From Bugula neritina (lineage: Eukaryota; Animalia; Bryozoa), in NCBI GenBank assembly GCA_964035545.1, contig OZ037768.1:22229319-22293318 (forward strand): a stretch of 64,000 bases of DNA, read 5' to 3'. A model generated the notes under the pieces. It ran no database searches, was not told the origin of the DNA, and saw only the letters and a list, made by a program, of their open reading frames with translations. The stretch's first letter is position 1. Each line of letters begins with the position of its first letter. The position numbers and the translations under genes were made by a program. Below are positions 1 to 33,119 of the stretch, piece by piece.

Positions 1-389
1 ATTAAGTGGGTATAGACTATCAGTTATCACTATGGAGTCTAAATTAAATATTCACTTTTACTTTTAGTGATTTACTTTGACTTCGAGTATGTGAACTTCA
101 ACTTCAAGTTTAAAGTCAAACTAAGTCCTCTAACTTAGTATCAGACTCTGAATGACACTTACAGTCACACTCACAATGTGACTGTCATTCACGGTGAGTT
201 ATTCACCTTCGGAGTCACACTCAATCTCAGAGTTGAGAGTGAGTCACCGTCAGTCTCAGTCTGAGTCAGTGTCGCTGAGAGTGAGTCAAACTCAAATTGA
301 TATTCGGAGGTCGAATTAGCTGACAACATCGCAAATGTAACTGTTTTGTAACAATACACCATCATTAGCATTTGATAAATCTAGCTTAC

Positions 390-469
390 CGATTGTCATT
401 GCCACCACGACGACCATTAAAATCCTGGCCATGTGAATAATTATTGAAGCTATCTCGATAATCTGCCAT
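390..469 (-). CDS. First coding exon of a gene running off the left edge; N-terminus resembles eIF4H/RRM-type RNA-binding proteins
   Basis: ATG at 469 in context AACATGG, reading MADYRDSFNNYSHGQDFNGRRGGNDN(R), followed by donor GTAAGC. Upstream acceptor TTGCAG at ~549 and donors at ~582 and ~679. The resemblance to eIF4H (MADF...GGRG) is from memory and only suggestive. Confidence 0.5.
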
Positions 470-679
470 GTTGAAGTTTCCAGGTTGCGCGCAAGCGCGA
501 TAATAAACTCACGGCGAGTCAATGTCGTCCAGCGTTTAAAGTTTAGCCTGCAAATGTTAAAATATCCCGCGTGTAAGCTTACGGCTATTATAACTTATAA
601 AGTTAGCACCGTTAATAGAGCTATATGGCATTTATAGAACTCAATTGAGTATTATCAACAAATATAAAATTCCGCTTAC

Positions 680-1020
680 AGCAGCACCTAGTTGGCAGTC
701 ACTGAATGCAATAATTGGAGAGAGAGTTCAAGTTAGTTAATACAACCAACCAATCACTGAACTAGAAATTATATCTTTTTAATTCACTAAACTGGTAAAG
801 GTCATAATATTTCCAAAATATTTTTTTTAGTTCAGTGTATACAACCATTGAACTATAACTATAGTTTCAGTTCAGTGTATACATAATACAACTATGTATA
901 TACGAATACCGTAGAGGTATTCACCCCCAGCTTGGCGCTGCTTCTAATAATAGTGATCATTATAATGCCGTTCACGTGTTATAGGTTAAAGCGTAGAAAT
1001 AGCCATAGGTGTCGATTGTT
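680..1020. promoter_or_regulatory. Probable bidirectional promoter region with E-box CACGTG (973-978) and a minus-strand pyrimidine tract CTCTCTCTCC (726-717)
   Basis: Lies between two divergent genes. The motifs are read directly; their function is inferred. Confidence 0.45.
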
Positions 1021-1774
1021 GTCAGTATAACTATTCATATTGTACTCTATTAGTATTAGTATTAGTATTAAATTTACTATAACTTTAACTATAAGTATAC
1101 ATTTACATTAGCTGATGGTAGTATTAATACCAATACTCATACTCAAAGTTAAAGTCAATCTCAAACGTGTGAAAGTCCATATGCATTATGATTATCATTA
1201 TGATTATGATTATGTCTGAATTATGATTATCATTATCATTATGAGTCACTCATTATTATTATGATAATGATTATTATTATCATATTCGGCTAGTGAATGT
1301 TATGCCCATAATGATACTGATTACATTTAATGATTTATGTTTACTGATTAGCCTTAGGCTTAGCATTATCATTATGATTATCAGTATCAGTATGGTTATT
1401 AATAAAGTTAGTACTTATAGTAATATTTATATACTAATAATATTTATATTCAATTTCATATTGATATTCATTTTGAATAATTCATTAAATGATTAATTGT
1501 GTCTTGTGATATAATCATAATGACTTTCCTACAGTATGATATTATAATTATTTATAATACTCAATATTTTTCCAAGTGCGGTATTGCTATCGATGTTGAT
1601 TTTAATTCTGCTCGACGTGTGTTGGAAATTAACTTATAATATTAATACTGATAGCACTAATTCTATTGCTAAATATAAAATAGTAAATATTTTAGGATTT
1701 GTTTAGTGAAACCCTACTGTCTAATATGTAAATAGCTTATATGTAAGTATGCAATGTGAATGTTTTAGTGGAAA

Positions 1775-4700
1775 ATGCAATTGAAAAGCTTAGAGACTGA
1801 AAAAGAAGCTGAAAATAAAGGCAAAAGTATACCGATGAGCTTAAGTGTCAAACATAACATATCTCAATCCCAATCACTACTGGATCTCTTTTGGAAACTT
1901 GCTGTAACAGATGAAGAAGAGAGAATTAATGCAGCCACACAGTTGGTGGCCACTTTAAAAAAAGTAACTGACTTTGCTCGGTTAAAATTCGAGTGTTGAG
2001 ATTTTTATGTTTTGTTGATCTAATATATACCTTGTTATAAAAGATTCACTTAAAGTTTGTCATTTACCTTTTTAAAACTAATTTATTAGCTTGTGCGTAA
2101 TGTTTACAATTTGTATCATATCAATTCCTTAAATCTAAGAAAATAGCTTCTAATGCTATAGAAAAGTTCAATATGGGACAAGTTCTATTTACATATAAAT
2201 ACAAATTTGTGTCAGAATGTGGAAAATGGAGATGAAGACGATTCACTCCAGTATTCGGCGAAGCGTCTGCTAGTTGGTCTCAGCTCTAACCGCCAAGCTG
2301 CTCCTCTCGGCTTCGCCACCGCTCTCTGTGAAATCTTGAGAGAGTTTTCAGACAATTTCCATACAGCGCAGCTTATTGCTATGATAAAAGAATGTCTACA
2401 GCCTGCCAAGCAAGACAACCGTTCAGTATGTCACGTCTCTTAAAGTTTCGAACATTTAAAATGTGAATTCAGTGGAAATTTGTTTTAATTTAATTTTACA
2501 ATAAAAGTTTAAGCATTTATTGTTTTCTAGCACCATACCCACTGCAGCATAGGAAAAATACTGGCATACTCAAGTCTTATTCGGTCTGGAATAATAAAAC
2601 AGGTGAGTTGAAGGTTAAAGTTGCCATCAGTTCTGACCTTTGGTCTGTACTTGAACGATCGATTTTTTAAAAATACCATTAAGATTATGTTGTGCTTTAA
2701 AACATAAATACCACCAATTACAGCTCCAACACTAACAACGTTTTTGTCACTAAGTTTAAAACCTTGAACTTCTTGCACAACTTGTTGTATTCTGTTGATG
2801 TTGCGAACGTTTATGTTGCTATAAATCATGTGACTACAGGCTGGTGATGCAGACGTTAGAGCTGTTGTCAGTTCTCTCGTTACTATCAAGACTCGGTATA
2901 CTATGCTCAGCTCAGCAGCTACAGACTGTCTTATCCAACTCTGTCAGGCAGTTAGTAACTTTAAATCTATCTAATTATATCACCCTAGTATCAGCTTAGT
3001 TTTATATATTAATATCACCTTAGTATTACCTCAGTTTTGTCTAATAATTTTACCTTAGTATTAGCTCAGTCCTATCTATTAATATCACTTGCTAGTTTAA
3101 CTCTTGTCTCGGTTGTTATATAAAGCTGCTTTGTGATGTGCCCATTCACCTGAGTACATAACACAGTTCACCTGAGTACATAACACAGTTCACCTGAGTA
3201 CATAACGCAGTTCACCTGAGTACATAACACAGTTCACCCGAGATTTTGCTGAGCTCTTAACATAACACATTGGCTGTGCTTGAAACTGCTGCGATGAATC
3301 TTGAAAGCTAGGACTGTAAAGGACACTAATCCTACAAAAATATTAGCTGTACTAGTCTCAAAAAGCAATATTTAGATAGCAAAATGCTTGACTAGTCTCA
3401 TGATGTTGTGGACACAAACTTCCTAGCCGGACACATCAGCTTAAAAGCTTTTTCCATAGAACTTTTCTTATCTTGAAAAAAATTCTTGAGATTCACTGTT
3501 TATGTTCGTAAAAAATAACATATTTTCTACTGGATGAAAATAAGTTGATAGCTTTTCTAGAGATGTGTGCTACATTGTAGAATATATATATTTATACTTT
3601 TGCTAAATTAATAAGTGCCACTGAAGCTTCTCAATTGCAAGCTTATATAAATTACAGTCAGCAATAGGTCTGCTATTTGTATGTTTGGTTTCTCATCAGC
3701 TGCCTCCAGACGATCTGCGTGACATCGTAACTGAACTACTTGGTGAGGATCTCACAAGTGGGTGGGAGAAATGTACAGCAGATACCTTACAGCTGCTCCT
3801 TGTGCTACAGGAACAGGTACTGTTTCTTTTATTGCACACTCAGCAATACCGGCAGTAAAACAATGCACATCTGCACTAAAATAGTGCATATCTGCAGTAA
3901 GAAAGAAACATGGAATGGCCATAGAAAAATATGTTGAAAGCATTTTTCGAATTAAACATATTTTATGGCGATTCAAGTTTTTGTTCTGGCAACTTTGTTG
4001 ACTAAAGTTATCTAAATCATTGACTCTTCTTATCATGCCATCAAATTAATACTGGCTGAAATAAGCAAATACTGTCATCTTTTTTATAAATAGTGAGACT
4101 TGTATCTTTTTTTTAATTTGATTTCAAGCTTTTTGTAGGCTATAAATCACATTTAATTGACCATGTTCTTTTCTAAGAATTATGCGTTTTTATCACAATT
4201 GTTACTAATTATTCTATCTTGAGTTTTGGGTATTAGAAAGTCTTTCCTGAAGTCTCGGAACACAAATCTGATCACCGGTTGCTGCCGACTGAGTAAGAAT
4301 CTGGAATGCTGTCAAGGCTGTACTGTGATAGTATCGTATTTTTTTAGAAAGTTCTAGACGCAGAGTATATTAGTGAACACTGGGGAGTAGAGAAGTTGGT
4401 GTGTCGTAAGACCTTCCCCTATCTGGCTAGAATCATGGTACAGAGTACGACTCACCACCCTATTGTACACCCTGTGAATGCCATGATAGTGTCACAGGCT
4501 GTCGCTGCCGGGCCTAAGGTCAGCAGCAAGCTGTGGAAGGATGTAATCATAGGTTTGTATGCGTCTCTGCAGTTTTTAAATGTTTGGTCCCAAGAAGAAT
4601 AACTGAGTAATATAGTATATACTAATAGTACTAATAGTACTATTAGTACTAGTCCTATTAGTACTAGTACTAATAGCATAGTTACTCTGTAGTATATACT

Positions 4701-7651
4701 AATAGTATAGTTACTGTGTAGTATATACTAATAGTATAGTTGCTGTGTAGTATATAATTATAGTATAGTTACTGTGTAGTATATACTAATAGCATAGGTA
4801 CTGTGTAGTATATACTAATAGCATAGGTACTGTGTAGTATATACTAATAGTACAGTTACTGTGTAGTATATATACTAATAGTATAGTTACTGTGTAGTAT
4901 ATACTAATAGTACAGTTACTGTGTAGTATATACTAATAGTATAGTTACTGTGTAGTATATACTAATAGTATAGTTACTGTGTAGTATATACTAATAGTAT
5001 AGTTACTGTGTAGTATATACTAATAGTATAGTTACTGTGTAGTATATACTAATAGTACAGTTACTGTATAGTATATACTAATAGTATAGTTACTGTGTAG
5101 TATATACTAATAGTACAGTTACTGTGTAGTATATACTAATAGTATAGTTACTGTGTAGTATATACTAATAGTACAGTTACTGTGTAGTATATACTAATAG
5201 TATAGTTACTGTGTAGTATATACTAATAGTATAGTTACTGTGTAGTATATACTAATAGTATAGTTACTGTGTAGTATATACTAATAGCATAGTTACTGTA
5301 TTGTATATACTAGTAGTATAGTTACTGTGTAGTATATACCAATAATATAGTTAACACATGGTATGGTATTTTAGGAGAAGTTTACAACACGGAGAAACAC
5401 TCCCGATGTTATATGATTTACCAGCTCATCTCAGAAGTTTTAAAATCATCTGACAAGATACAGTCTGTAAGTCTTCTGGCTTTTATCAGTTTGACCGCTT
5501 GCTTCTTCCAATATGGCTGCTGCTGGTTTCTGCCAATATGGCTGCCGATTTTGTTGCAACTCTACTTTACCTAGATGTTGCTTGAATCAGTTGCATAAGA
5601 ATAGTGTTTTTAGACATAAATTTGCTATTCTTGTACCTCACTACATGTTAGTACTGTGATTGTATACATGTTCTTGGCTAGGTGGCCAGCATCTTCTGCC
5701 CTGAGCTAATTGGTCCGTTGATGCGGCAAATGACCAATAGAGATACTTATCTGCACAAAGCTGCAGTTAAACTTGTAAGTGTTCATTGTTCCTATAGTTT
5801 ACCGGAATCTTCTTCTATTTCAACTCTTGGTATGAAAGTTCAAGCTGGCAATGTGTGCTACTAATATTGTGAGGAGCTTTGTTATGAGATTTGTTATGAG
5901 ATTTGTTTCTTATAAAGAAAGTCACAAGTTTTATCCTCATCATTCAAGTCTTAGCTTCTTGAACTTATTTAAAGTTGTACAGTTTTTATAGAACTTTAGT
6001 ATTGAAGTAAACTAGGTACAGTAAACCGATAAATTAATAAACTAGATCAATAGATCAATATACTAGGTGTAGTAAACCAATAGATCAATGAACTAGGTGC
6101 AGTAAATTAATAAACTCAGTACATTTATGGATTGTTTTCTTCAAAGATCTTCATCTCGACTCCTTGCGTTATCCACCATTACTACCAACTGTATTGAATA
6201 CACCTAAACTCAGGTCATCTGTATGCTATACATACATATATATGTATATATATATGTATGCTATACATACATACATACATATATATGTGTGTGTTATAGA
6301 TGGCCGATATAGTAGATGTTATCAAAAAGACAAGTAAAGGGAGCTTACAGCTGGAAATACTGCGCTGTCTACTCACAGAGCCTGGATCCTTCATGTTTGA
6401 CTCTATCACTGCTACCAGAACCGTCTCAAATATCATTTCTAATGTGAGATTTATAATATATACTAGATCTAAGAGGTTTTCTGTGCCATTGAATAATCTT
6501 CTTGTAACTTAGACTCGTGTTTTATTTACAAACAAGTTCAAGAATGTTCTGTTATTCTACTTGATGTAGAGTCTTGACCAAAGCAGACGCATCCTGATTT
6601 GTGAATACAAAATGTCTGCATAATATCGCTGTATGTTAGCTCAGTTTGTAAATCTCTCATTGGTCTATTCAGTATTGGAGTTATGCTTCCAATAGTTTTC
6701 TGATTATCATTTTCCAGCTGTCGGCTGATGCTGCTAAAGAGTTTAGCCAGGATTTAATGAGTGTCATATCGGCAGCAGCACCTCTCTGGTGAGTCTAGAC
6801 TTTAGTAGATCTGCTGTCCCTAATCTGGTGGTTTCTTTAGTCTTTTTTATCCTATGTAGGGTTGTGAGTAACTTAGTGAATTCTAAATCTAAACATTTGT
6901 ATCCATGCGCTGCCACCTGCCGGATGTTATTGCATGTCATGTGGTGGCAAATGTCACTTGCTGTGACAGTGTCACATGATGTCACTTGTCACATACTATT
7001 GCATTTCATTTGGTGTCACATGTCACTTGCTGTCACATGTGCTATAAACCTTTGAGAATATATTGAGATGGGATTTTGCAGTGGTCGCCGTGGTGATGGC
7101 ATAGTGTCATGGTCCTCCATCACTCTCACACATCTCCTCAATATTCCTTCCATGAGACAGGATGTGTCCGACTCAACATGGCAGACAGATATACTCAAGT
7201 TCCTGTTTCTACATAGCTGCTTTGTCCTCAAACAGCCGCTACCCAAACTAGACCATGTAAGTCTCTACTGTAGGTCTGCTCATAGTAAGTGTATGTTAAT
7301 GTAGGTCACGTGTATATTATATGCGTTTTACCAATATATTAAAGTGGTATGCTTTTTACATAGACAAATGTTTGGTGTGTTGAAATGTTGAATTCTACTC
7401 AAATGATTTCACGTTTTACTTCGACCTGTGTTGTTTTGTCTCTTCAAGATCTGAACCAAACTTGATGTCTAAATATATATTTTATATACTACTCAGTATA
7501 AATATATGTATTGTATATATTACTCAGTGTGAAGAAGTCGTTACTTTGACAGACTCTGACAGACTGTCTATTAAAGAAGCCTTACTCAAAGGGTTGAGTA
7601 TCCTCTCCACATTTCAAACAGGTGAATGTGTGTGTATATCTGTATACAGGT

Positions 7652-7720
<69 letters not shown>

Positions 7721-10700
7721 GTATACAGGTAAGTGTGTGTATATCTGTATACAGGTAAATGTGTGTGTATGTCTGTATACAGGTTCTATATATTATGTAA
7801 CTAAATGCAGACGTATCTCTCTATGTAGGTCACAAGGGAGGTTCCAGTAAAAAAGCAGACGGATTGGATTACATGACAATTCTTGACTCACTATTCAAAT
7901 ATGCTTCTGTAAGTGGAATTCTTTGGAAATACCCTGTACTTGCGGTAGATATTGGCTAATGAAAGGGTATTGCTAACAGCTTAGTTATTTGTGTCAATGA
8001 CTGAAAAGTGTTCTGTCGTACTCAGTGGATGAAAGCAGAGTTAAACGTGCCTTTTTATAGAACTGAAAGTAACTCTGTGTGACATGCAATGAGCTCTGCA
8101 GCTGTTCCAGTCTAGAGCTCACTGGGTAGAAGAAACTGTCACTGTTTAGTTTCCTAGTACAATAAACCTGCCTGGAGACGCATTTCTCTGTAGACTATTA
8201 TATAGGTATATGATGTGTAAATAACAATACGCCATACAGTCTAATATCTATTGCAGAAGTTGGTTAGCTCCACCGAGAGTGTTGAGACATTTAGAGTTGT
8301 GTCCCCGCAAGAGTTGGACATCTGGAATCAAGTGGAAACAACGTGTAAAAAAATCACTAAACACCAAAAAGTACGTTTGAAAAGTTATTGATGCCGTCTT
8401 ACAGGCATAAGTTGAATACTAGTGCGGGAATTTTTAAATTTGTTTTTTTTAATCTGGTTCAGTAATTGAGTTCTAAAACGTTAAAATATGCACAATGAAA
8501 TGTCATTTGTGGTTTAAATGGTGCTTAAATTCTTTGTGTTTTTTGTGTGAAATCAGATATTGAATATTTTGTGATTCGGTTTTGTGTTTGGTAAGCAGAT
8601 TAAAATTGTATTTCTAGTTTATTATTATTACTGTGAAATACCTGCGACTTTCCTTCTTTTAGAGTGTGGGAGGAGACAAATCTAAAAGTGCGATGTTTGA
8701 AGCGTTTCAACTGATGCTGCAGTTGTTTGGCCTTCACCTTTACATAGTAGAGTCCTCGGAGAGAGCTGAAGTTATGGACACCATTCAGGTAGTTGCAATG
8801 ACCTAATTATTTTCAAACTTGAGTGCAAACCCTGTCAAGTAATATATTCTTCTGCTGGTTTCTAGAGTCAGTAAAAGTTGGAGTAATCTCCACGTGTCAA
8901 CCCAAATGGAATATGTTGTTAGGCTTGTTTGGTGATTGTCTGGTGCAGTCAATATAAGGTGTTATAACCGGCGATATGGTAGTCGACAAAGTTCTAACTA
9001 AGCAGTTTAGCAGTCAAACATAAAATGATGAATTGTTGTACTAGAGAATGATAATATAATTGAGTAATAGCTGTGTTGAATTTTGGTTCTCTTTAGTTTG
9101 TTTTAATAGTAATGCTCTTGTTTGCAGGAGATAACTACGTGCTTCAGCAAGGCTGTGAGTCGTACTCGCACCAACAAGGAAGGTGTGTATGATGGTTATA
9201 TGTTGTTTACCCGAGTGGTTGTTAGTATTATTATAAGGGTTGTGCTTATTTTAATATCTCAAGTTGCTATGTATGGCTATTAAAATGTGCATAGAAAATT
9301 TTTTAGAACTAATATAGATGTCAAAAATATGTGGTCAAATTAGCATAGTATATCATGTTATAGAAATAGTATAGACAAGCTATGTATATATTGTAGAACC
9401 AGTATAGACATGCAAGGTATAGATTGTAGAACTATTATAGAACTACGTATGTATTTCGTAGAACCAGAATGGTGTGAAGTTATCACTGAAGTACTCATCA
9501 GTTTGATGTCAAAATCCTCTCACCTGCTGCGTACTGTCAGCACCAGCGTGTTTACGAAGATTCTACCCATGTGTAACACTGCGTCTATTCAGCTTATCCT
9601 AGATGTGAGTATTATAACATGTGTAACACTGCGTCTATTCAGCTTATCCTAGACGTGAGTATTATAACATGTGTAACACTGCGTCTATTCAGCTTATCCT
9701 AGATGTGAGTACTATAACATGTGTAACACTGCGTCTATTCAGCTTATCCTGGATGTGAGTACTATAACATGTGTAACACTGCGTCTATTCAGCTTATCCT
9801 AGATGTGAGTATTATAACATGTGTAACACTGCGTCTATTCAGCTTATCCTAGATGTGAGTACTATAACATGTGTAACACTGCGTCTATTCAGCTTATCCT
9901 AGATGTGAGTATTATAACATGTGTAACACTGCGTCTATTCAGCTTATCCTAGATGTGAGTACTATAACATGTGTAACACTGCGTCTATTCAGCTTATCCT
10001 AGATGTGAGTATTATAACATGTGTAACACTGCATCTATTCAGCTTATCCTAGATGTGAGTATTATAACATGTGTAAAGTTACATTTATACCTCCACGATT
10101 TTCAGTCAGAAATTCAATTTGGCTGAGTTGAAATTTCACCGAGTTGCATTGCACTGTAAAAGCCACTCGTCGAAATTATTGGTTTCTGGTAACCTAATCG
10201 GCCGATTTCAGAATAACCATCATTGGGAAGGATAACTCCTTGTATATATCAGTATTTATGTTTATAATTATATCGACTGCCTTTCTCAATTATCGGCTGC
10301 CTTTCTCAATTATCGCTTTTATGCTGTCAGTTCAACTAATTTATTACGTTTTCAAAGGGCGTCAAATAGTGATTAAACGAGTTATATTTTAATATTATAA
10401 AGTGAGCTTCCGCATCAATATGTGACCTGGCACCACAAAACAAGGGATGTATATAAAATGTTGAAAACCTAGTTATTACTATGGAGTGATAGAACAGACT
10501 TTTTCAAACATTTTGCACTTTATTTGAAGTCTCTAGCATAAATAGAACTTGAGATATCAGTATTTATAAACTTAAACGTTTTTAGAATTTCTAAATTACT
10601 GTTTCGAGAAAATCGCGTTTAAAGTTGGCAACTCTACAATAAGTTGAGAATTATTTGTTTACAATTTACAAGCCTTAGCAACGGGTCTTTGTATGATAGG

Positions 10701-13700
10701 AATAGTGACAAATTTGGTATCAAAATAATTGTGAAAGTTTGGGCTTTCTGTTAAACTAAATTTCATGCTGCCTCAACATAAAATTAGGTCAAATATGGCC
10801 GCCAAACTTTTTGTCTAACTTATTTGTCAATTTGCTTTTTACTTTGTTTAATGATTGAAAGGTTCAACAATTCCAGCAAAGAAGAGGATGTTTCAGCAAA
10901 TTTGTGTGTTGAGATATTTGAATTAGGCATCCAAGTCAGCAGGAAGTCATATAAAACAAAATGGCAGCTGCTTCCTGTTATACATTGAATATCTTCCTCT
11001 CCTCTAATATATTGTGTAATATATCGAACTGCAGCTATTGAGCTGTGCTGTTTCATAGTTATTGCTTAATAAGTAGAACACTTATGAGAAAATCATTTGA
11101 CTATTATGAGATCATTCGAGATTTATTCATAAATATCTTTATAATCTCTAACGGCAACTAAATTTAGCAATTGATGTTGAAAATATAAACATAAAATCAG
11201 CGATTAGAACTTTTGAGTTTTATTAGGCATTAATATTCACATTTAAAACATCAAATACACTATTTTAAAAAACTAATTAAATGCAGTAACAAATCCAGCC
11301 TGGATACAACCATTATGCTTGAATTAACTCTAATTAAAAAAAGAAAATTAAGTAGCTTCTACGGTTTTTGCAAAAAATGCACTTTTCATCTTTCTACTTC
11401 CTTGGTCTTCATAATATGAGTTTACGGAGTATGGACACATAACATCATGTATGTGGCAAAAGCTTCATCACTATCATCAGCTGATTTTCTAGCAATTATA
11501 GATGCTGCTACTTGACATCTATTCTGCCAATCTATCCATCTATTGTCTATTCCAGAGCTGCAAGTACAATGTTGACTTTTTTAAATAACAAAAGAAAACG
11601 GTAGCTTGATTAGAAATTATAAGCAGTTATATTATAAAAATTTAGTTGGTTAAACACTCTTGTATTATGGCAGCAGTTAATTGTGATCCTGCATTTTATC
11701 AACATTTAAATGTATTGAATTAAACAGAACAATTTAAATTAAAAAAATTGTTGAAAATTTTCAAGCACATCATTAAAAGACTGCAAACCTTTTTATGAAT
11801 GAAATAAGCAGAAGCCATAACCTTGCAAGCCAAAATTCAGAGTGTCTACATTAGGAGTGTTAGATTGATAGGTAGTAGAGTTGTGTAGGTATAAGTCTTC
11901 ACTCTAATGCCCTTACAAGTCCACTTTCTAAAATGTACAGAATTATTCTATATTAACATAGTATTATCAGTAAAATTACACATTATGCACTTGAATATCT
12001 AGCATATCTGCAATTGGCAATTTTGAAGCAATGTCTTTCGATAACTATTAACCACTCAGGCATTTAATTGAGTAAAAAAGCTAGCTAAATGCAACTGAAT
12101 ATATTAAAGACATTTACTATAAAATCAATTTGAATTCAATAAATTACTTTAAAATATGAATAAACTTTTGCTCATCCTTTATAATAAAATTGAAAAGTTT
12201 AGACTGTTTATGCATTCAGTTAGTGTTACTACTCACTAAATAAGACTAAAAGTAACTTACTGAAGAACTAAGTCAGTCAACTATAGAATCAATATGAACT
12301 CGCATTAATATTTCATCATTATACTCATTTACATTTAATCACATTTACCATTTCAATTTGTTTATAGGTGATGCTTTTATCAATATAAATAGGATTACCA
12401 ATTGAGTTTTGACAGTAACTGTAAGCCTGCATAATGTGATAAAGATTTTATCATTATATTTTAAATCAAACTTTGAGCTAATTTGAAAATCACAAAAGGA
12501 AACGGTAGTTTGACTAGTAGGCCTATTGTTAATACTAATAGTAATAGTAATAGTAATCAGTAACTGTATTCACAAAATCTAAGACAGAGGCTAAAAGTTA
12601 CTAAGAATAAGTCCAATGTATATTTAAATATTAACTATAGAATAAATTAATAAATATAATACTATCAGTATAAGTATCAAGTTTTAAGACCGAAGGCGAA
12701 ACTCAGAGTCAGACTCAAATAGTGAATTTATAATTATTAATTATTACTTATACTAATACTATTAATATTAATGAGCTACATTTGGTTTCACTGCCAAATA
12801 CCAGTATCAGTAAATCATCATCATGAATAATATTCATTAATCATTATGATTATCATTATGAGTAACCGTACCTCAAACTGTGAGTCATAGTGAGAGTCAT
12901 TTAAACAGTTACTAGTAGTAGTATAGAATAAGAATAGAGTCAATAGTGAATAGACATAGTCACATACTCATACTGATACTCCTAGTCATAGTGAATGTGA
13001 TAGTATAAATATTAATAAATTGATAACTACAAATAATCCTGGCAACAATTCTAAGTTAGTAGCGTAAATGATTGTTTTGAGCATAATTACCTGTATTGTT
13101 GTGATTTTCAAGCTTGAACGCTAAAGATAAAGATTAAGTTTAGCATTTATCACCAAAGGGCAAAACAGCTCAGTAACTTAAAAGCTAACTTTGGATGGAA
13201 CACGATGAAAAACTAAAACTAGCCTGCGATTTTAAATACGATGCTTCTGATAATGCGAAGAAAGAGGTGTAAGCTAAACTCATTTGATAAAAAATAAATT
13301 TGCAAGATCTCACCCTATGAAAATGACTAAAATTGTCTTCTTTCTTTATTTGATAACTTCGCAATTTTTTCATCATTTAAAAAATTGAATGCCTTAGTTA
13401 CCAACTTTAAATGCAATTTTGGAGCTGAAGAAATTATCAAATGCTTACGAAAGTATGATTTTTGAAATCCTTGGACTTTTTTGTATTAGAAAAGTTCAAA
13501 ACCTAAAAACTGGAAAATAATTTCAAAGTTAAGTATATCCAAATTAAACCTTCATTTACTACACTTTATAAACGCCGCCACATCCCCGGTTTTGTCGCGA
13601 CTGGTCACATATGATGTTAACGATATTCGGTACAACTATAAAGGGGTACTCAGACGAGTGAAATTAACTGAAACTCAATACTTTTTTCAGCAGAGCTATA

Positions 13701-22623: not shown

Positions 22624-32776
<10,153 letters not shown>

Positions 32777-33096
32777 TTTGATTTTTCAGTCTCAGTCTGA
32801 CTCTGAGTATTCTAACTTGAAGTTGGACTTCTAGTTCTAGTAGTAGTAGTGCACACTACCAGTACCTGTACTCAAGTAAGTAGTACTAGTAGTTTTAACT
32901 CCAAGAAAATCGCTGATAGATGACTTAGAATTATTTAACTTTTTAGATAAAAAAACTTTGGGTTCGTCAGAATTGGACACTTTATAGTAATATAAATGTT
33001 TATATTGTATCAAATATCAGTATCACTATCAGCATGAGTATCAGTACTCAGTATGAGTATGAGTGTGAGAAAATCGCACTTGACACAAGACTAATT

Positions 33097-33119
33097 TTTC
33101 GCGCTGAAACAGTCACGTG
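33097..33119. promoter_or_regulatory. E2F site TTTCGCGC and E-box CACGTG upstream of MCM3
   Basis: Consensus TTTSSCGC at 33097-33104 and CACGTG at 33114-33119, ~320 bp upstream of the ATG; MCM genes are established E2F targets. Confidence 0.65.

Follow-up and report, generated by a model that had tools for sequence, protein, structure and literature searches.

A period-6 hexamer tract beside the eIF4H/MYBBP1A divergent promoter of Bugula neritina belongs to a genome-wide promoter-side class and probably renews itself by slippage and hairpin template switching

The window analysed here, a 64,000-nucleotide stretch of the genome of the bryozoan Bugula neritina (contig OZ037768.1 of assembly GCA_964035545.1, forward-strand positions 22,229,319 to 22,293,318), opens with two divergently oriented genes. 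The left-hand gene, eIF4H, lies on the minus strand: the coding part of its first exon, read from the translation, occupies positions 390–470 (ATG at 470–468, donor GT at 389–388), exon 2 is found about 0.9 kb to the left of the window, and the best match of the product among solved structures is 2dng, the RRM of eIF4H (E 1.3e-4). On the plus strand, the first coding exon of MYBBP1A (1775–1963, 63 codons, donor GT at 1964–1965) begins with an ATG at 1775, seven bases past a TTTTAG splice acceptor. The MYBBP1A/DNA_pol_phi profile is entered in exon 2 (profile positions 1–55, from 2216) and is followed by colinear matches in later exons up to 14851, the exons of both genes having been searched singly rather than as a joined spliced model.

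Between the two genes, a stretch of roughly 168 nt (727–894) has no counterpart in a related Bugula lineage to which the locus was aligned; it holds a short internal direct repeat, TTCAGTGTATACA. It is followed by a conserved block on the plus strand (895–1019) with an E-box, CACGTG, at 973–978, around which 31 nt are identical in the two lineages. This block is a candidate MYBBP1A core promoter and would also contain a short, non-coding exon 1; the presumptive MYBBP1A transcription start site would then lie here, although it may instead fall between 1566 and 1770. Next comes the subject of this study, a hexamer tract of about 0.5 kb at 1020–1565 that separates the promoter region from the MYBBP1A start codon, and then an ordinary AT-rich spacer (1566–1768, plus strand) that ends in the TTTTAG acceptor (1763–1768), which is present here and kept in the related lineage. 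The order of conserved E-box block, tract, conserved acceptor and ATG exon fits placement in a first intron, and the tract most likely occupies the promoter-near part of a MYBBP1A 5'UTR intron, by analogy with the genes described below. A segment of the spacer (1583–1640) was considered as an alternative promoter and found no support, having five mismatches in 79 nt, near the neutral level.

A twin of the tract is found on the other side of the promoters. This second tract (1–330) extends about 160 nt beyond the left edge of the window, follows a GC-richer lattice (T-S-A-S-W-N, where S is C or G and W is A or T) and represents the promoter-near part of eIF4H intron 1: it begins about 70 nt into this ~1.3-kb intron and spans only ~480 nt, after which ordinary intron sequence continues for a further 730 nt, indicating that the tract is tied to the promoter side rather than to the intron as such. 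The proposal, made in the original prediction, that two such tracts bracket a shared divergent promoter region is thus borne out, with eIF4H as the left and MYBBP1A as the right gene, and the same twin layout recurs at other genes.

Close inspection of the 1020–1565 tract, which has no assigned strand, reveals a patchwork of short hexamer arrays with a period of six and a GC content of 23%. All of the hexamers first quoted for the region are found at their given positions: AGTATT occurs three times at 1052–1069, ACTATA ACTTTA ACTATA AGTATA at 1076–1099, ATTATG/ATTATC arrays begin at 1185 and 1220, and ATTATC ATTATG ATTATC AGTATC AGTATG lies at 1365–1394. Tandem Repeats Finder assigns 44% of the tract to five short imperfect arrays (3–16 copies, 75–100% matches), and the remaining 56% is still periodic, with 17 lag-6 pairs compared with 4–5 at lags 5 and 7. 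From 1001 to 1600 the GC content stays between 0.20 and 0.27, which is not the GC-rich, high observed/expected CpG composition of a CpG island.

To what extent this pattern exceeds chance was judged against 1000 dinucleotide-preserving shuffles, which served as the null model for both A.T counts and autocorrelation. The tract contains 102 gapped A.T pairs compared with 74 ± 5 in the shuffles (z 5.3), and the autocorrelation of A.T reaches 0.27 at lag 6 (z 6.0) and 0.16 at lag 12 (z 3.8). Autocorrelation peaks are confined to lags 6, 12 and 18, and lags 10–11 show no peak. Ten chains of at least three A.T at exact 6-nt spacing are present, where the shuffles give 1.1 ± 1.0 (maximum 5). An "ANT-periodic" sequence, as the tract had been described, is therefore supported in so far as A.T is in excess and recurs every six bases, while the period-3 reading that the term suggests was rejected, lag 3 not being significant (z 0.8). 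The chains do not share a register either: their phases modulo 6 are 5, 2, 2, 4, 1, 3, 2, 3, 3 and 2, so that no phase spans the tract.

The related claim that A.T is kept while the hexamer drifts likewise stands in part. A.T does recur at lag 6 (41 pairs, against about 14 at other lags), but the periodicity of T.A is stronger (58 lag-6 pairs compared with 12.7). A phase-tracking lattice fit, which captures 2.24 bits in the tract and 0.31 ± 0.12 bits in shuffles, yields T(.85) S(.59) A(.77) T(.59) W A(.54), i.e. T[C/G]ATTA, as the repeat unit. T-[C/G]-A, recurring at six-base intervals, is thus retained better than A.T; the retention of A.T is one face of a T-N-A-N-W-N lattice. Whether the base at the S position is C or G is uncorrelated between adjacent units of this tract (8 same and 10 flipped at T?A steps, 7 same and 4 flipped at A?T steps). 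The 1020–1565 tract hence displays the sequence features by which we recognise the class to which it belongs: a period-6 lattice, W at alternate positions, and S in an A-S-T or T-S-A context. Readings of the units as GATA, homeodomain, AP-1 or telomere-like motifs, judged by eye from the sequence, were set aside, each fitting some units only.

Comparable tracts are found elsewhere in the window, the full set comprising 1–400, ~1000–1600, 4400–5350, 12000–13150 and 32350–33100. The last of these flanks exon 1 of MCM3 (32690–32776, minus strand), with an E2F-like site and a CACGTG on the far side of the exon, so that the order of these sites and then tract is the same as that of the E-box block and tract at MYBBP1A. 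An internal MYBBP1A intron holds a 29-nt minisatellite (4659–5353, 24 copies, 94% identity) composed of TAGTA/TACTA words; it scores as tract-like, yet it is a plain tandem array with a strong excess of G over C (skew +0.3).

In the 216-Mb assembly, a run of six A[C/G]T in phase, spaced by 6 nt, is found 49,008 times on each strand, compared with 5,918 for the reversed pattern. The position of tracts relative to genes was examined at ten loci of the CCT/HSP60 family in addition to the window; these genes were found by Pfam, the 10 kb around each first domain exon were analysed, and the ATG exons of the CCT genes were placed by their conserved N-termini. In all ten genes a tract lies 0.5–2.5 kb upstream of the first domain exon, whereas the gene bodies are at background (mean lag-6 pairs per 250 nt, 10–13 in tracts and 1–4 in bodies). 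At CCT1, CCT5, CCT6 and eIF4H the tract follows immediately on the ATG exon, within intron 1, and several of the CCT/HSP60 loci carry twin tracts around a gap of 0.35–0.9 kb, as at eIF4H/MYBBP1A. The two HSP60 genes (C1:28338300-28348299 and C2:6262550-6272549) have the tract upstream of the ATG exon, like MYBBP1A. In one of these paralogues, the CpG-containing block that immediately precedes the tract holds a perfect heat-shock element of four units. This element is some 1.8 kb upstream of the ATG exon, from which the tract separates it; the other paralogue is arranged head-to-head with HSP10, as in vertebrates. The succession of heat-shock element, tract and ATG exon supports a layout in which the promoter comes first, the tract second and the ATG exon third, as expected of a 5'UTR intron. 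Taken together, the MYBBP1A tract belongs to a genome-wide class located within ~0.1–2 kb of the promoters of broadly used genes, with lengths of 0.4–1.6 kb and many different hexamer units, in both orientations, built on one lattice. We found no description of such tracts in the literature searched, which included bryozoan genome and metagenome papers, and the class is unusual and apparently undescribed.

The behaviour of the S position was followed in tracts defined by any-base identity at lag 6, that is, with no reference to A.T. Where S stands in A?T or T?A, the next unit again carries S, but the choice between C and G is random, with 0.42–0.55 flipped at lags 6, 12, 18 and 24. Between adjacent units, the pooled counts are 267 same and 329 flipped, the fraction flipped at lag 6 being 0.49–0.55, whereas the identity of W is mostly retained (0.22–0.25 flipped at lag 6). 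Neighbouring units are therefore not alike at every position, as those of a short tandem repeat would be: A/T is kept and C/G is random. A 12-mer in which ACT and AGT alternate was also considered and rejected, as flipping is random at lags 12–24 too. The contexts of isolated S are skewed towards the self-complementary ones, with observed/expected ratios in tracts of 1.9 for AST, 1.5 for TSA and 0.74 for ASA/TST, compared with about 1.1 for all of them in the background.

In 13 tracts oriented by their genes there is no strand bias (C 1203 vs G 1243, ACT 321 vs AGT 297, TCA 228 vs TGA 236), and words resembling 5' splice sites or poly(A) signals are equally frequent on both strands. This lack of sense/antisense asymmetry argues against a role at the RNA level and against strand-biased, transcription-coupled mutagenesis; the latter, or a deaminase-type process, would fit the geometry but is not favoured, given the absence of C/G or ACT/AGT skew.

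The presence of arrays in both orientations is reflected in extensive self-complementarity. At 1185–1280 an (ATTATS)n array runs into its own reverse complement around a centre near 1247 (no strand assigned), with arms at 1185–1230 and 1235–1280 (72%) and core arms at 1219–1246 and 1248–1275 that match at 82% across a 1-nt loop. In total, 17 inverted-repeat pairs are found in 600 nt at the tract. Folded as single-stranded DNA, the whole tract gives a z of -5.25; over 18 tracts the mean is -1.27, compared with 0.09 in 11 AT-rich controls (p 0.009), although strongly negative values are seen in only some of the tracts. No Rfam family matches the tract.

A comparison with the related Bugula lineage reveals how such DNA changes. 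The orthologous locus was located with the MYBBP1A exon-1 peptide, which retrieved one ORF of 89% identity, its cluster mate being on JGI contigs of 16.3 and 9.1 kb. Flanks and introns are 91–92% identical between the lineages, eIF4H exon 1 and promoter (385–565) are 100% identical, and the only period-6 segments on the 12.7-kb locus of the related lineage are the two tracts. There the MYBBP1A tract keeps its place, size (476 vs 457 nt), GC content (0.233 vs 0.234) and strength at lag 6, yet the two versions are not collinear. Instead, a segment at 1307–1482 (no strand assigned) is inverted, as judged from three reverse-strand matches in inverted order: 1307–1394 (E 5e-25), 1397–1417 (21 nt, exact) and 1412–1482 (E 2e-14). 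Short matches suggest that the inversion may reach ~1285–1520, and inverted repeats flank the segment at 1306–1321/1380–1395 and 1203–1216/1508–1521. The AGTATT/ACTATA arrays are about three times longer in the related lineage and the ATTATS arrays shorter, while the twin tract at eIF4H is 83% identical where it can be aligned and carries indels of 183 and 30 nt. Alignable tract DNA evolves faster than neighbouring introns, and collinearity resumes at ~1539 with ~92% identity, an intron-like level. The slippage-type turnover that had been proposed from one genome finds direct evidence here, in arrays differently expanded and a tract rearranged between flanks that are 91–92% identical. The ferritin gene that adjoins eIF4H in the related lineage (contig 1–4500), which appears to be of the secreted type, has no period-6 tract over the 1.7 kb that precede its ferritin-domain exon. 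The gene may lack a tract, or the contig may stop short of its 5' end.

The substitutions in the tracts also differ in kind from those around them. Between the lineages, C<->G exchanges account for 10 of the 53 substitutions in tracts (19%), a small sample from one orthologous locus, compared with 12 of 281 in flanks (4%; Fisher p 6e-4), and the share of transitions falls from 65% in flanks to 45% in the tract. Some of the C<->G changes within arrays could reflect the alignment of non-orthologous units after slippage, although several stand in unique context.

An independent test is provided by a mobile element in the window. An intron of MYBBP1A contains a 3,195-nt transposon with terminal inverted repeats (10418–13612) that lacks a long ORF, ends in ATATGTGACC... 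and ...GGTCACATAT, and carries a hexamer tract of its own at 12200–13030. The genome holds at least 36 near-full-length copies with 88–99% identity, two of them at 99.3%, which indicates that the family was active recently. When 11 dispersed copies were compared, C<->G made up 13 of 93 variant states in the tract and 8 of 215 in the rest of the element (p 0.002), and C<->G and A<->T together 31 of 93 and 33 of 215, respectively (p 7e-4). Columns with gaps were about 20 times more frequent in the tract (19% vs ~1%), and nine of its 13 C<->G columns lie in an A-S-T or T-S-A context. Per S site, the rate of C<->G in tracts is about 5–8 times the neutral level (5-fold in the transposon copies, and an estimated 8-fold or so across lineages). 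The recurrence of the same spectrum in dispersed copies shows the signature to be a property of the sequence wherever it is located. The orthologous comparison, the inversion, the two tests of the mutation spectrum and the transposon comparison are new here.

These observations are, in our judgement, probably best explained if the tract is a self-renewing patchwork of palindromic microsatellites, remodelled by slippage and by template switching in hairpins, for which selection on phase is unnecessary. Such a process would act at the level of duplex DNA and not of RNA. Replication slippage would create, expand and contract the arrays, and arrays in both orientations would give rise to many inverted repeats and quasi-palindromes. 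Recombination, or polymerase template switching, between these inverted repeats could then invert the spacer, while template switching would rewrite bases to the complement of their hairpin partner, complement-type changes arising where both partners have an identical base. Homogenised arms and inverted spacers are known outcomes of template switching between short inverted repeats (PMC8604942, PMC7954356), and we infer that such switching is the cause of both the inversion and the complement-type changes seen here. In combination, these processes would keep a strand-symmetric T-N-A-N-W-N lattice, scramble C versus G at the S positions and accelerate evolution beyond that of the neighbouring intron. 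We may further speculate that unwinding or negative supercoiling on the promoter side favours hairpin extrusion beside promoters. The model has limits: template switching alone predicts A<->T flips about as frequent as C<->G, and the A<->T excess is weaker; the six-base unit and the promoter-side position are left unexplained.

The original prediction had instead invoked selection for the phase of ANT. In its broader form, this explanation regards the tract as a cis-element phased by selection, serving as a binding platform or DNA-shape element (a zinc-finger array, a minor-groove or shape readout, or an organiser of nucleosomes or supercoils). Several observations could be accommodated: the position beside promoters of broadly used genes is very regular, tract size and GC content are equal in the two lineages, a mobile element carries a tract as well, and a pattern in which S and W are kept and C/G is free would be tolerable to a minor-groove or orientation-blind readout; the periodic A/T clusters (PATCs) of C. 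elegans offer a precedent for functional periodic non-coding DNA (PMC4947018; bioRxiv 10.64898/2026.08.08.743475). However, there is no period 3 and no phase common to the tract, T.A outperforms A.T, the sequence is not conserved, and alignable tract DNA diverges faster than introns, with C<->G exchanges at 5–8 times the neutral rate, which is beyond what relaxed constraint can give. The dispersed transposon copies show the same spectrum, and the persistence of the tracts is uninformative, a divergence of ~9% being too low for it to bear on selection either way. The lattice can be maintained by mutation alone, through homogenisation of inverted repeats and template switching; selection for ANT phase is not supported, and we regard a selected element in the broader sense as unlikely. 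With a similarly low probability, the tracts may constitute a sequence-encoded, lineage-specific mechanical or topological buffer just downstream of busy promoters, which would extrude hairpins or cruciforms or exclude nucleosomes. The cell would need this buffer, as C. elegans needs its PATCs, and the self-renewing dynamics would be the way in which it is retained rather than a mere scar.

That the tracts are relics of a promoter-seeking transposon that carried hexamer arrays, in the way that Helitron minisatellites gave rise to PATCs (bioRxiv 10.64898/2026.08.08.743475), seems improbable. The 3.2-kb element does hold a typical tract in a family of dozens of copies, but its non-tract parts match nothing near the host tracts of the window, the ten other loci or the related-lineage contig, where tract-to-tract matches of low complexity are the only ones, and the locus itself has no other copy in the genome: a search of the assembly with window positions 500–2500 recovered no second copy, haplotigs included, its hits being limited to other tracts, on either strand and over 150 nt at most.

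Even less probable, and largely refuted, is the view that AT-rich (ATT)n/(ATTATG)n microsatellites simply decayed, independently of promoters; the original prediction had named such decay, together with AT richness, as the account that would overturn it. Short imperfect arrays do make up 44% of the tract, and short tandem repeats abound in human promoters as well (PMC3566118). The periodicity nonetheless extends beyond the called arrays, all ten test genes are marked by tracts in their 5' regions and not in their bodies, the S positions favour self-complementary contexts only inside tracts, and C/G carries no memory between adjacent units, which slippage alone should create. Finally, an RNA-level signal in the first intron (decoy 5' splice sites, U1 sites or splicing enhancers) is barely credible, for although the tract is intronic where this can be read (CCT1, CCT5, CCT6) and contains GTATGA- and GTGAGT-like words, the 13 oriented tracts show no asymmetry in composition or in 5' splice site-like or poly(A)-like words, the inverted segment retains its character, and Rfam returns no match.

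The self-renewing palindromic patchwork that we favour resembles several known systems without coinciding with any of them. Like the tracts, PATCs are abundant, periodic and non-coding. PATCs populate introns of genes expressed broadly or in the germline, and the tracts, intronic at eIF4H, CCT1, CCT5 and CCT6, may lie in genes of this kind too; in both cases it is the character and not the sequence that is conserved, and PATCs have been proposed to arise from repeats remodelled by mutational bias (PMC4947018; bioRxiv 10.64898/2026.08.08.743475). Unlike PATCs, however, the tracts have a period of 6 rather than 10, lack An/Tn clusters and are confined to the promoter-near first intron; their lattice is strand-symmetric with C/G scrambled and no strand bias tied to the direction of transcription, and any function is putative. 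With human promoter microsatellites (PMC3566118) they share short tandem repeats at gene starts and fast changes in length, but they consist of many hexamers, oriented either way, on one lattice; they are found at almost all of the genes of this type that were tested, and C/G is uncorrelated between neighbouring units. The inversion of spacers and the complement-type, multi-nucleotide changes are those of template switching at inverted repeats and quasi-palindromes (PMC8604942, PMC7954356, PMC7202029), which is known as a sporadic event and not as the maintainer of a genome-wide promoter-side class; that link would be specific to our model. Vertebrate CpG islands, too, are a compositional signature on the promoter side and may be seen as the imprint of a mutational regime that acts locally, whereas the tracts are AT-rich (23% GC), CpG-poor, periodic and built of repeats.

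If this interpretation is correct, a self-maintaining repeat lattice marks the first kilobase behind housekeeping promoters throughout the genome of an animal. After CpG islands and PATCs, this would be the third case of promoter- or gene-linked DNA whose character is conserved in the absence of sequence conservation, and the first such DNA to be built on palindromic microsatellites. The tracts would offer a natural system in which short-range template switching and C<->G flipping can be measured in vivo. In practical terms, they point to gene 5' ends in the annotation of bryozoan genomes and explain why short-read assemblies of these genomes break at such sites. For MYBBP1A itself there is no special consequence, the locus being a typical member of the class.

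Two further observations were made along the way. On a number of small contigs in the assembly (C154, C204, C213, C101, C80 and C231), the Cpn60/TCP1 genes lack introns and contain numerous in-frame TAA/TAG but hardly any TGA, which suggests that DNA of an organism with a ciliate-type genetic code, either an associate or a contaminant, is present in the assembly. Within MYBBP1A, a 50-nt unit is repeated about ten times at 97% identity (window 9568–10076), starting inside the exon that matches DNA_pol_phi 573–622. Each unit consists of the end of the exon and a GTGAGT donor, amounting to a tenfold amplification of a 5' splice site, and the use of a later donor copy would shift the reading frame because 50 is not a multiple of 3.
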